NCBI RefSeq assembly: GCF_000009045.1
Contig: NC_000964.3
Coordinates: forward strand, 1,736,001 to 1,800,000
Direction of reading: 5' to 3'
Length of the DNA: 64,000 bases
DNA from: Bacillus subtilis subsp. subtilis str. 168
Lineage (GTDB): Bacteria > Bacillota > Bacilli > Bacillales > Bacillaceae
The notes under the pieces are model-generated. The model made no database searches, was not told the origin of the DNA, and saw nothing but the letters and a program-made list of their open reading frames with translations. Of the stretch, positions 3,383 through 45,220 are shown in pieces; the stretch's first letter is position 1, and each line of letters begins with the position of its first letter. Both the position numbers and the translations under genes were made by a program.

Positions 3383-5500
3383 ATGGGACAAGAAAAACAT
3401 GTCTTTACCATAGATTGGGCCGGAAGAACGCTTACCGTTGAAACCGGCCAGCTTGCCAAACAGGCAAATGGTGCTGTGATGATCCGCTACGGTGATACAG
3501 CAGTACTTAGTACAGCAACCGCTTCAAAAGAACCTAAACCGCTTGATTTCTTCCCTCTTACTGTAAACTATGAAGAAAGATTATATGCGGTAGGGAAAAT
3601 TCCGGGCGGATTTATTAAAAGAGAAGGACGTCCAAGTGAAAAAGCGGTTCTTGCCAGCCGTTTAATTGACCGTCCGATCCGTCCTTTGTTTGCCGATGGA
3701 TTCCGTAATGAAGTTCAAGTCATCAGCATTGTCATGAGTGTTGACCAAAACTGCTCTTCAGAAATGGCTGCCATGTTCGGTTCATCTCTTGCACTTTCTG
3801 TATCGGATATTCCGTTTGAAGGACCGATTGCAGGGGTTACTGTCGGACGCATTGATGATCAATTTATCATTAACCCGACAGTCGATCAGCTTGAAAAAAG
3901 CGATATCAATCTTGTCGTTGCCGGCACGAAAGATGCGATTAACATGGTAGAAGCGGGAGCGGACGAAGTTCCTGAGGAAATCATGCTTGAGGCCATTATG
4001 TTCGGCCATGAAGAGATTAAACGCCTGATTGCATTCCAAGAAGAAATTGTTGCAGCAGTCGGCAAAGAGAAATCTGAAATTAAGCTCTTTGAAATTGATG
4101 AAGAGCTTAATGAAAAAGTAAAAGCTTTGGCAGAAGAGGATCTGCTGAAAGCCATCCAAGTTCATGAAAAGCATGCCCGTGAAGATGCCATTAACGAAGT
4201 GAAGAACGCAGTTGTGGCAAAATTCGAGGATGAAGAACATGATGAAGACACAATCAAGCAAGTGAAGCAGATTTTATCCAAGCTTGTGAAAAATGAAGTT
4301 CGCCGCCTGATTACTGAAGAGAAAGTAAGACCGGACGGCCGCGGTGTCGATCAAATCCGTCCGCTCTCTTCAGAGGTTGGCCTCTTGCCAAGAACGCACG
4401 GTTCAGGTCTATTTACAAGGGGACAAACTCAGGCCCTCAGCGTATGTACGCTAGGTGCTCTGGGAGATGTGCAAATCCTTGACGGCTTAGGTGTCGAAGA
4501 GTCGAAACGGTTTATGCATCATTACAACTTCCCGCAATTCAGCGTTGGGGAAACAGGACCGATGCGCGGACCGGGACGTCGTGAAATCGGACACGGAGCA
4601 CTGGGTGAGCGTGCGCTTGAGCCAGTTATTCCGTCTGAAAAAGACTTCCCTTATACTGTCCGTCTTGTTTCAGAAGTGCTTGAATCAAACGGTTCTACAT
4701 CTCAAGCAAGCATTTGCGCAAGCACACTTGCAATGATGGATGCCGGTGTACCGATTAAAGCGCCAGTTGCTGGTATTGCGATGGGTCTTGTCAAATCAGG
4801 CGAACATTACACTGTCTTGACTGACATCCAAGGCATGGAAGACGCGCTCGGAGATATGGACTTTAAAGTAGCGGGAACTGAAAAAGGCGTAACGGCCCTG
4901 CAAATGGACATTAAAATTGAAGGCCTTTCCAGAGAGATTCTTGAAGAAGCGCTTCAGCAGGCGAAAAAGGGCAGAATGGAAATCCTCAACAGCATGCTTG
5001 CAACATTAAGCGAATCAAGAAAAGAGCTTTCTCGATATGCGCCTAAGATCTTAACAATGACCATTAATCCTGATAAAATCCGCGATGTCATCGGACCAAG
5101 CGGGAAACAAATCAATAAGATCATCGAAGAAACCGGTGTTAAAATTGATATTGAGCAGGACGGCACAATCTTTATTTCCTCTACAGATGAAAGCGGCAAC
5201 CAAAAAGCGAAAAAAATCATCGAAGACCTTGTGAGAGAGGTTGAAGTCGGCCAACTTTACCTAGGTAAAGTGAAACGGATTGAAAAATTCGGGGCTTTCG
5301 TTGAAATTTTCAGCGGAAAAGACGGTTTGGTGCACATTTCAGAGCTTGCGCTTGAACGCGTAGGGAAAGTTGAAGATGTTGTGAAAATCGGAGACGAGAT
5401 TCTTGTCAAAGTCACTGAAATTGATAAACAAGGACGAGTGAATTTATCCCGCAAAGCGGTGCTCCGTGAAGAGAAAGAAAAAGAAGAACAACAATCTTAA
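3383..5500 (+). CDS. pnp: Polyribonucleotide nucleotidyltransferase (PNPase)
   Basis: Two RNase PH domains ([24 protein letters not shown]) followed by KH and S1 domains; 705 aa. Confidence 0.99.
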
Positions 5501-8255: not shown

Positions 8256-8282
8256 ATATGGAAAAAGCGCATCTTTTATATT

Positions 8283-8310
8283 CACCGGTATTTCCTTTTG
8301 ATCATAAGAT
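8283..8310 (+). promoter_or_regulatory. SigK promoter of spoVF
   Basis: CACC-16 bp-CATAAGAT matches SigK consensus mACm-N16-CATAnnnT; spoVF is an established SigK target. Confidence 0.8.
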
Positions 8311-8366
8311 GAAGGGGAGCTTAACAACTAGAGATCCAGTATATACAAAGAAGGTGAACGTTTAGA

Positions 8367-9260
8367 ATGTTAACCGGATTGAAAATTGCAGTTATCGGCG
8401 GTGACGCAAGACAGCTCGAAATTATAAGAAAGCTCACTGAACAGCAGGCTGACATCTATCTTGTCGGTTTTGACCAATTGGATCACGGTTTTACCGGGGC
8501 AGTAAAATGCAATATTGATGAAATTCCTTTTCAGCAAATAGACAGCATCATTCTTCCAGTATCCGCGACAACAGGAGAAGGTGTCGTATCGACTGTATTT
8601 TCGAATGAAGAAGTTGTGTTAAAACAGGACCATCTTGACAGAACGCCTGCACATTGTGTCATTTTCTCAGGAATTTCTAACGCCTATTTAGAAAACATTG
8701 CAGCTCAGGCAAAAAGAAAACTTGTTAAGCTGTTTGAGCGGGATGACATTGCGATATACAACTCTATTCCGACAGTAGAAGGAACGATCATGCTGGCTAT
8801 TCAGCACACGGATTATACGATACACGGATCACAGGTGGCCGTTCTCGGTCTGGGGCGCACCGGGATGACGATTGCCCGTACATTTGCCGCGCTCGGGGCG
8901 AATGTAAAAGTGGGGGCAAGAAGTTCAGCGCATCTGGCACGTATCACTGAAATGGGGCTCGTTCCTTTTCATACCGATGAGCTGAAAGAGCATGTAAAAG
9001 ATATAGATATTTGCATTAATACCATACCGAGTATGATTTTAAATCAAACGGTACTTTCTAGCATGACACCAAAAACCTTAATATTGGATCTGGCCTCACG
9101 TCCCGGGGGAACGGATTTTAAATATGCCGAGAAACAAGGGATTAAAGCACTTCTTGCTCCCGGGCTTCCAGGGATTGTCGCTCCTAAAACAGCTGGGCAA
9201 ATCCTTGCAAACGTCTTGAGCAAGCTTTTGGCTGAAATACAAGCTGAGGAGGGGAAATAA
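8367..9260 (+). CDS. spoVFA: Dipicolinate synthase subunit A
   Basis: MLTGLKIAVIGGDARQLE; GLGRTG; DLASRPGGTDF; LAPGLPG. Confidence 0.96.
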   Translation: MLTGLKIAVIGGDARQLEIIRKLTEQQADIYLVGFDQLDHGFTGAVKCNIDEIPFQQIDSIILPVSATTGEGVVSTVFSNEEVVLKQDHLDRTPAHCVIFSGISNAYLENIAAQAKRKLVKLFERDDIAIYNSIPTVEGTIMLAIQHTDYTIHGSQVAVLGLGRTGMTIARTFAALGANVKVGARSSAHLARITEMGLVPFHTDELKEHVKDIDICINTIPSMILNQTVLSSMTPKTLILDLASRPGGTDFKYAEKQGIKALLAPGLPGIVAPKTAGQILANVLSKLLAEIQAEEGK

Positions 9261-42321: not shown

Positions 42322-44220
<1,899 letters not shown>

Positions 44221-44232
44221 CGGGGGTGGTAG

Positions 44233-44270
44233 GCATTGATCCATTCTCTGAATGGATCAATGCTTTTTTT
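44233..44270 (+). terminator. Intrinsic terminator after mutL
   Basis: Perfect 14-bp stem GCATTGATCCATTC-TCT-GAATGGATCAATGC plus T7. Confidence 0.92.
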
Positions 44271-44368
44271 GTACTCCTTCGAGTGTCAGATTATAAGAAA
44301 CGGTTGTAAACGTGTGAGCAGTGTTAACGCATTATACTTCATGGTTCCTCCGTATAACAAAATTTCCA

Positions 44369-44397
44369 TTTACAGGCAATTGGGATTAATGTATATT
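44369..44397 (+). promoter_or_regulatory. SigA-like promoter of an intergenic small gene
   Basis: TTTACA-17 bp-TATATT. Confidence 0.6.
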
Positions 44398-44419
44398 TTG
44401 GGTGAGGGGGTGGAAACAT

Positions 44420-44503
44420 ATGGCATGTGGTCCGAAGATCATTATCTTTTTGGATGAACTTGATGATCCAAATGTGAGAATCATTTTAGAATGCAGAATT
44501 TAA
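44420..44503 (+). CDS. Candidate small protein, 27 aa (MACGPKIIIFLDELDDPNVRIILECRI)
   Basis: ATG 9 nt after GAGGGGG; upstream promoter; dedicated downstream terminator; below ORF-track cutoff. Confidence 0.6.
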   Translation: MACGPKIIIFLDELDDPNVRIILECRI

Positions 44504-44522
44504 ATTACAACATTGTGTTTTG

Positions 44523-44553
44523 CTCCCTGTTCGTGTGAACAGGGAGATTTTTT
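44523..44553 (+). terminator. + strand intrinsic terminator of the small gene
   Basis: CTCCCTGTTC-GTGT-GAACAGGGAG-ATTTTTT; U-tract only in + orientation. Confidence 0.85.
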
Positions 44554-44617
44554 CGTTTATATAACTGGTGATGTCCAAATATAGGGTGTTATGAATTTTC
44601 CATATCTGCCATCGGCT

Positions 44618-45073
44618 TTAAGCTGCTTCTCTATTAGGCTGGTTATCAAAAGCAAGTTCAATGATAGCCATGAAAGCTGATATCACAACAAGCAAGACAT
44701 CTGGAATATAAATAGACTGCATAAAGTAATCTGCAAAACAGATCGTTATAAGATTGCTGATAAAATACAGTATAAAAGCAAAAAGTGCAGTCTTTTTCAA
44801 TGAAAGTGATTTTGCCAAAATGATAGAGATAATCTTTGTGAGTGGGTCTATGATTAAACCTACAGCAAAGCAGGCTAAAATAAATAAAGCTAATGTTTGA
44901 TTGGAAGCGTATGTGATGCCAAGTATGGAGAATAAGCCTTTCATCCCGAAGAAAAAGCCGCCGAAGATGACTGCAAGCGCGATGGCCGCGATAAAAGTAA
45001 TAGATACAATTCCGATTAATTTTGATCTCAGGTTAAAATCTTTAGAGTGCTCGTTCTGTTCTTTTTGGTTCAT
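44618..45073 (-). CDS. ymzD: Membrane protein, 4 predicted TM (possibly YrvL-like regulatory family)
   Basis: 151 aa from ATG 45073 after SD AAGGGAG; four hydrophobic stretches; family assignment from recollection. Confidence 0.8.
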   Translation of the reverse strand: MNQKEQNEHSKDFNLRSKLIGIVSITFIAAIALAVIFGGFFFGMKGLFSILGITYASNQTLALFILACFAVGLIIDPLTKIISIILAKSLSLKKTALFAFILYFISNLITICFADYFMQSIYIPDVLLVVISAFMAIIELAFDNQPNREAA

Positions 45074-45185
45074 GTATGACACTCCCTTCACCTGCTTACT
45101 CATACAAACAGCACCCTTGAATCAGCCCAAAATATCTATAAGTCTGTTTTCTGACGAAAATAGTATAGCATATTTTAACAAAACC

Positions 45186-45220
45186 AAAAAAGGCCCTTTC
45201 CACTGGGGAAGGGCCTTTTT
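45186..45220. terminator. Bidirectional terminator between ymcC and ymzD
   Basis: AAAAAAGGCCCTTTCC-ACT-GGGGAAGGGCCTTTTT. Confidence 0.85.

Follow-up and report, generated by a model that had tools for sequence, protein, structure and literature searches.

The small RNA S612 (ncr952) of Bacillus subtilis contains a conserved 27-codon reading frame and is probably a dual-function RNA

The gap between mutL and ymzD of Bacillus subtilis subsp. subtilis str. 168 holds a transcription unit of about 150 nt, which is the published B. subtilis small RNA ncr952/S612; the transcript itself is not new. Comparison of homologous loci indicates that a 27-codon frame within this RNA is conserved and under purifying selection, and that S612 probably also makes a small peptide. 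The initial annotation of this DNA had described the locus as a real mini-gene, which the comparative evidence (a frame open throughout, omega 0.41) supports, and had named a dual-function sRNA as one alternative. The latter is the best reading. It is probable that S612 is a dual-function RNA, one that serves as a very small mRNA and, in addition, pairs with mRNAs of other genes. The conserved ORF, the Shine-Dalgarno (SD) site and the pattern of selection are discussed in neither of the two papers studying S612, and coding by this RNA appears to be unreported.

The transcription unit between mutL and ymzD

Coordinates refer to the window, the whole stretch of 64,000 nucleotides that was analysed (positions 1,736,001 to 1,800,000 of contig NC_000964.3). 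The features of the unit and of its surroundings are the following.

44231-44270, + strand: intrinsic terminator of mutL, with a 16-bp stem (stem-loop to 44265), a 3-nt loop and a T-run
44369-44397, + strand: SigA-type promoter TTTACA-17-TATATT, matching the consensus at 10 of 12 positions
44404-44554, + strand: whole transcript, sRNA ncr952 = S612, 151 nt (Rfam match, northern blot, Hfq co-immunoprecipitation)
44404-44413, + strand: Shine-Dalgarno site GAGGGGGTGG at the extreme 5' end of the RNA, its GGAGG-equivalent 9 nt from the ATG
44420-44503, + strand: 27-codon ORF MACGPKIIIFLDELDDPNVRIILECRI, from the ATG at 44420 to the TAA ending at 44503, open in all complete homologous loci
44489-44499, + strand: GAATGCAGAAT (codons E24-C25-R26-I27), the most conserved nucleotide block in the alignments
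44523-44553, + strand: intrinsic terminator of S612, with a 10-bp stem (44523-44546), a GTGT loop, then A and T6
44618-45103, - strand: ymzD, YrvL-family membrane protein gene convergent with S612 (ORF list, profile match)

The mutL gene ends at 44220, and its terminator sets it apart from the S612 unit. The RNA starts at 44404 (genome position 1780404), 7 nt 3' of the -10 box, and the promoter block ATGTATATTTT is unchanged in 15 of 16 distinct homologues. The S612 terminator folds at -20 kcal/mol (z = -4.8), and 99% of its cells are paired across the homologues. Read on the minus strand, the hairpin runs into CAAAACAC and thus lacks a U-tract. S612 is an autonomous transcript whose promoter and terminator are both its own and conserved. 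The promoter, the SD site, the ORF, the hairpin with its T6, the separate terminator of mutL and the restriction of the U-tract to the plus orientation had all been read in this gap by the initial annotation, and each was recovered at the position given above.

The 16-nt leader of S612 consists almost wholly of a very strong SD site. The site (GAGGGGG at 44404-44410) has a duplex energy of -16.6 kcal/mol with the 3' end of 16S rRNA; just 0.24% of the window's 2537 ATGs reach an SD duplex energy of -14 kcal/mol, and the site is stronger than the SD of every neighbouring annotated gene. In the program-made ORF list the same frame figures as a 33-aa ORF started by GTG (44402-44503). The start at GTG 44402 was rejected, being unconserved and devoid of an SD. 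Length alone gives an ORF of 27 aa no significance, since the 5.5 kb examined are overlapped by 85 ORFs of 20 aa or more; the signals combined, together with their conservation in relatives, are far beyond chance.

As was found by the Rfam comparison, window positions 44406-44550 match the family RF02453 'Bacillus sRNA ncr952' over model positions 1-143 of 143, with 170.3 bits (gathering score 100) and an E-value of 1e-41. Irnov (2010) detected ncr952 by northern blot as an RNA of 151 nt at 1780404-1780554, between mutL and ymzD, and stated that the sRNA candidates were not screened for ORFs. Thus, the independent plus-strand transcript of about 150 nt postulated in the initial annotation exists, and the surmise that it might already be catalogued was correct. 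In the study of Dambach (2013), ncr952 co-precipitated with Hfq (RPKM ratio 45, co-IP peak at 1780422-1780527), as did bsrE, RatA, as-bsrG and as-bsrH.

S612 was characterised by Peng (2024) under a title that calls it a small non-coding RNA. According to that work, the promoter is off in LB and on in DSM, glucose and NaCl repress it, and the efficiency of the terminator is about 90%; a review describes the promoter as active early in sporulation. Overexpression of S612 led to extreme cell elongation (filaments), slight growth retardation and the absence of spores. Six mRNAs were repressed in GFP reporters, and the S612 point mutants M1-M4 relieved the repression. The knockout of ylmD was less filamentous than the S612 overexpression, and the authors could not fully account for the blocked sporulation or for the degree of filamentation. 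The text of Peng (2024) mentions no ORF, start codon or SD. The overexpression construct begins at the transcription start site and would therefore carry both the SD site and the ORF.

The convergent gene ymzD encodes a protein of the YrvL family (PF14184, E-value 4e-34), which also weakly matches the NCBIfam model of the anti-sigma factor RsiO (E-value 0.008, far under the cut-off). The gene lacks a canonical terminator ahead of the S612 hairpin, so its read-through would be antisense to S612. An antisense RNA named SurX (BSU_misc_RNA_89) is annotated on the minus strand at 44404-44554; the 2018 re-annotation puts surX at 1780554 as 'sigW-dependent', and the paper cited for this names S613 only, which sits 5' of ymzD. 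Peng (2024) treated SurX as antisense to S612, without northern blot verification. SurX may be the 3' read-through of ymzD. Between ymzD and ymcC, a GC-rich hairpin (45195-45213) gives weak, sub-threshold matches to leader-type Rfam models (Thr_leader, trpB, RefA9); it is flanked by T-runs on both sides and is thus most simply a bidirectional terminator serving ymcC.

Conservation of the reading frame and the predicted peptide

Homologues were collected from mutL loci, from the surroundings of YmzD homologues, by an HMM search of 1.84 billion representative proteins and with a metagenome pattern. The complete ORF was found at 27 loci, in 14 different sequences, and five types of peptide are distinguished; at a 28th locus (L007) the homologue is cut by the locus end and is open as far as the sequence reads. 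Types A, B, C and E are known from DNA, and type D only as a called protein.

Type A, 27 aa: MA[CGY]GPKI[IV][IV]FLDELDDPN[VG]RIILECRI; variants in B. rugosus (L002), MSCGANIVIVLDELDDPNVRIITECRI, and B. spizizenii TU-B-10 (L006), MACGPNMIIVLNELDDPNVRIIVECRI
Type B, 27 aa: MTF[END]PNRIILLDELEHEIEGII[YF]ECRI
Type C, 28 aa: M[AT][LF]SPKIVIILDEL[TA]IENEGILVFECRI
Type D, 27 aa: MTFDQHVIIILDELANENEGIIAECRI
Type E, 27 aa: MNKESKVIIVLGEFENEAEGIILECRI

The family is limited to the B. subtilis clade (subtilis, spizizenii, inaquosorum, cabrialesii, vallismortis, tequilensis, rugosus) and one divergent outlier, type E. Beside ymzD of B. mojavensis and B. halotolerans the S612 homologue is missing, and B. 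mexicanus (L005) lacks both S612 and ymzD. In the atrophaeus, amyloliquefaciens, licheniformis and pumilus groups, the sequence up to 3 kb from mutL yielded no homologue, and neither regular expressions nor tblastn revealed a paralogue in 80 mutL loci or elsewhere in the window. None of six peptide forms was present as an exact match in a collection of 15 billion proteins. The blastn search of phages gave no match, the tblastn search of plasmids gave chance matches only, and the 34 matches of a 17-mer scan of viral contigs were all due to chance. In metagenomes, the first pattern had no matches, and the second retrieved one true homologue and two chance matches.

Type E was found in Logan assemblies (L136:600-905, and also L137-L139), at a locus unrelated to mutL-ymzD, where it is convergent with a split oatA-like acyltransferase/SGNH gene. 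The host is a Bacillus; the nearest named relative of the neighbouring protein belongs to B. pumilus (55% identity). The promoter, the SD and the 27-codon ORF are kept there, and the hairpin of the S612 terminator has decayed. The mini-gene persists in type E as an autonomous module outside the mutL-ymzD context. According to the initial annotation, frameshifts or stops in loci that keep the hairpin would favour a pure sRNA; type E presents the opposite picture.

The frame of the ORF contains no stop in any homologue, and the other two plus-strand frames contain one to six stops each; 0.37% of column shuffles stay open in all sequences (p = 0.0037). The ATG and the TAA are invariant. The sole indel inside the ORF is one whole codon (3 nt), as against indels of 1, 2 and 3 nt in both UTRs and in the loop of the terminator. 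The SD duplex energy ranges from -12.3 to -17.0 kcal/mol in all homologues, which corresponds to the top 0.24-1% of the window's ATGs; the site is kept or improved, and in types B and C it reads AAGGAGGTG.

Substitutions point in the same direction. The window sequence and that of B. cabrialesii (L115) differ by 10 synonymous and 2 non-synonymous changes (p = 8e-6). Pairwise dN/dS lies between 0.03 and 0.6 in the compared pairs, except L002 versus L006 (0.96), and changes within types fall on codon positions 1, 2 and 3 in the numbers 12, 5 and 19. The codon model gives an omega of 0.41 and rejects omega = 1 (2dlnL 11.95, p = 5e-4). Mean pairwise amino-acid identity compared with column shuffles is marginal (p = 0.056), and the peptides of type A share 48-59% identity with those of types B and C. 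The constraint is only moderate, and the short peptide evolves fast between types.

Constraint on RNA structure was considered as the cause of the ORF conservation and rejected. In the three Rfam helices located within the ORF, covariation does not exceed that of shuffles; 79%, 70% and 44% of their cells are paired, and they are broken in many homologues. RNAalifold retains the terminator and an invariant GCAGAAU/GUUUUGC helix only.

The residues M1, I/V9, L11, E13, I21, E24, C25, R26 and I27 are invariant or nearly so, and the C-terminal ECRI motif is almost invariant. The initial annotation had named a conserved ATG, SD and cysteines along with a synonymous bias as what to test for, and had suggested, noting Cys3 and Cys25, a small peptide closed by a disulfide or binding metals or thiols. 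The ATG, the SD, the stop codon and the synonymous bias (10:2) are borne out, and so is Cys25, which is invariant; Cys3 is replaced by G, Y, F, L or K in homologues. An intramolecular disulfide or a two-Cys metal site was rejected on account of the variability of position 3.

The peptide is acidic, with a net charge of -2 to -5 in the family. Its longest hydrophobic run is 5-6 residues, and it has no transmembrane segment. Two hydrophobic strand-like segments (residues 7-11 and 21-25) are accompanied by an acidic loop. AlphaFold2, run on a 33-aa surrogate with six non-native N-terminal residues, predicted with low confidence (pLDDT 55) a beta-hairpin in which residues 7-11 and 21-25 of the native peptide form the strands. 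Profile searches of Pfam, NCBIfam and the PDB gave no relative of the peptide, and the 1.84 billion representative proteins contained none beyond the family itself; a function can therefore be suggested from phenotype and context only.

A natural allele of the B. subtilis type, P0072 (33 aa, MACGPKIIIFLDELDDPNVRIILDAEFKLQHCV), is present on seven contigs from NCBI, Logan and ENA. It equals the window peptide through residue 23 and continues as DAEFKLQHCV, which resembles a frameshift with loss of the ECRI tail. This indicates that the C-terminus is dispensable in at least some strains.

Some B. subtilis annotations (P0071, P0075-P0078) call an 88-aa 'hypothetical protein' ending in the S612 peptide (window 44236-44503). 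The call reads through both the terminator of mutL and the promoter of S612, and it arises in sequences whose T-run behind the -10 box differs by 1 nt, which fuses a 73-aa ORF (44236-44457) with the frame of S612; it appears to be an artefact of annotation. Gene calls that hold the exact peptide are limited to such artefactual upstream extensions (P0071 and relatives) and to variant alleles.

The 3' end of mutL was also found to be a hot spot of insertion. In B. tequilensis an insert of about 2.7 kb lies between mutL and the S612 homologue (L007:3880-6760), and at its far junction the last mutL codons and the mutL terminator are duplicated. Phage-integrase fragments and several small genes without a known role occur at the mutL 3' end in L124/L125 (about 8280-8468) and L132 (6012-6227).

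RNA pairing and alternative explanations

The principal alternative is that S612 is a purely non-coding, trans-acting base-pairing sRNA with an incidental ORF, the SD-like 5' end being a ribosome-binding 5' stabiliser or a pairing element. The repression of the six mRNAs and its loss in mutants M1-M4 agree with this explanation, as do the co-immunoprecipitation with Hfq and the existence of allele P0072 without the ECRI tail. It leaves unexplained the open frame (p = 0.004 after rounding), the omega of 0.41, the 10:2 synonymous bias and the confinement of indels to a whole codon, and the internal RNA helices are not conserved. We consider it rather improbable that pairing is the whole function of S612.

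Peng (2024) reported that the 3' end of the ORF (GAAUGCAGAAU...) pairs with target mRNAs, and the legend of their Fig. 5 gives S612 nt 91-100 (window 44494-44503) as the region pairing with yycS. The block GAATGCAGAAT overlaps this region and is conserved at the nucleotide level even in the distant type E, which also speaks for the pure sRNA. The two observations make a function of this end at the RNA level plausible, and for this reason 'dual-function RNA' is preferred to 'mis-annotated mRNA'. Mutations at nt 91-100 would at the same time alter the invariant C25, R26, I27 or the stop codon, and the text of Peng (2024) describes mutants on the sRNA side only. It follows that the published mutant data would not separate effects of the RNA from those of the peptide.

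It is very unlikely that S612 is an orphaned 5' leader, composed of a leader peptide and an attenuator, of a co-directional gene for a CPBP/Rce1-like intramembrane protease lost from B. subtilis 168. A gene of this kind (PF02517, 250 aa) starts 77 nt past the S612 terminator in L004, L122-123, L127-129 and L134-135 (in L127 at 4473-5225, - strand), and no sigma-70-like promoter dedicated to it was detected in a simple scan. S612 is followed in the window by the convergent ymzD, the co-directional CPBP gene being present in some relatives only. A co-directional gene downstream is absent from B. subtilis and from every type A locus, yet these show the strongest synonymous bias; B. mojavensis (L130-131) has the CPBP gene without S612; and type E lies at an unrelated locus. 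Furthermore, the terminator has no competing alternative structure and an efficiency of about 90%, and the conserved GCAGAAU/GUUUUGC helix is stacked on it. In L118 the CPBP gene occupies two frames and is apparently a pseudogene. The presence of an invariant Cys three residues from the peptide C-terminus next to a 'CAAX-protease-like' gene is curious.

Least probable of all is a pair similar to type I toxin-antitoxin systems, with a toxin encoded by S612 and an antitoxin supplied by the convergent antisense RNA (SurX or read-through of the ymzD 3' UTR): a small ORF-bearing RNA convergent with an annotated antisense RNA, the Hfq co-precipitation shared with bsrE, RatA, as-bsrG and as-bsrH, the perturbation of cells on overexpression and the position next to a hot spot of island insertion would fit, but the peptide is acidic (-2 to -5), has no hydrophobic run above 5-6 residues and no transmembrane segment, and matches no toxin family in Pfam or NCBIfam, its overexpression retards growth only slightly, SurX lacks verification by northern blot, and the downstream context, and hence any antisense promoter, is not conserved (the CPBP gene in many relatives, another place in type E). 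The joint deletion of s612 and surX is viable, which is uninformative on this point.

Possible mode of action and relation to known systems

The dual-function RNA would act in the following way. According to the literature, the SigA-type promoter fires in sporulation medium and early in sporulation, and an RNA of 150 nt ending at its own terminator is made. Judging from the conservation, ribosomes would load on the strong SD site and translate an acidic peptide of 27 residues. Known B. subtilis biology suggests that a ribosome bound at the 5' end should in addition protect the transcript from 5' exonuclease. Target mRNAs would be paired by the last part of the ORF, as reported by Peng (2024). 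More speculatively, the peptide may bind a protein partner and is a candidate cause of the filaments and the lack of spores on overexpression.

The reported RNA targets do not account for the phenotype of filamentation and sporulation. It is conceivable, if somewhat doubtful, that the peptide rather than RNA pairing causes the filamentation and the complete block of sporulation; S612 would then represent a new family of developmental micro-proteins, confined to the B. subtilis clade, which inhibit division or the entry into sporulation and whose last codons double as the seed of the sRNA.

S612 can be likened to SR1/SR1P and SR7/SR7P of B. subtilis, which, as reviewed, are small independent transcripts that combine pairing to mRNA with a 39-aa cytosolic peptide acting on a protein partner. 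Profile searches reveal no relationship to these systems, the predicted S612 peptide is shorter (27 aa), and in S612, unlike SR1 and SR7, the reported pairing region overlaps the last codons. By phenotype only, S612 resembles MciZ, a 40-aa inhibitor of FtsZ whose excess results in filaments and fewer spores and which forms beta-strands on binding its partner, as described in a review; the S612 peptide is weakly predicted to form a beta-hairpin. No sequence relationship between the two was found, and MciZ is regulated by sigma-E, in contrast to the SigA-like promoter of S612. The type I toxin mRNAs of bsrE/SR5, bsrG/SR4 and txpA/RatA share with S612 a small ORF on a transcript of sRNA size, a convergent antisense RNA (for S612 the annotated SurX) and the association with Hfq, but S612 differs from these toxins in its acidic peptide, in the absence of a transmembrane segment and in the only mildly deleterious overexpression. 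The closest counterpart is ncr952/S612 as published, which has the same locus, strand, ends and sequence but is titled non-coding.

In the recent publication S612 figures as a non-coding RNA that regulates morphology and sporulation, in what is the main model organism among Gram-positive bacteria, and the most pronounced of its phenotypes were left unexplained. The coding evidence obtained here by sequence comparison would correct the label 'non-coding'; the class of dual-function RNAs itself is already known. If S612 is translated, its phenotypes and the data on its point mutants would need re-interpretation, B. subtilis would gain a third dual-function sRNA, and a family of 27-residue peptides, for which genome annotations contain no separate gene, would join the catalogue.
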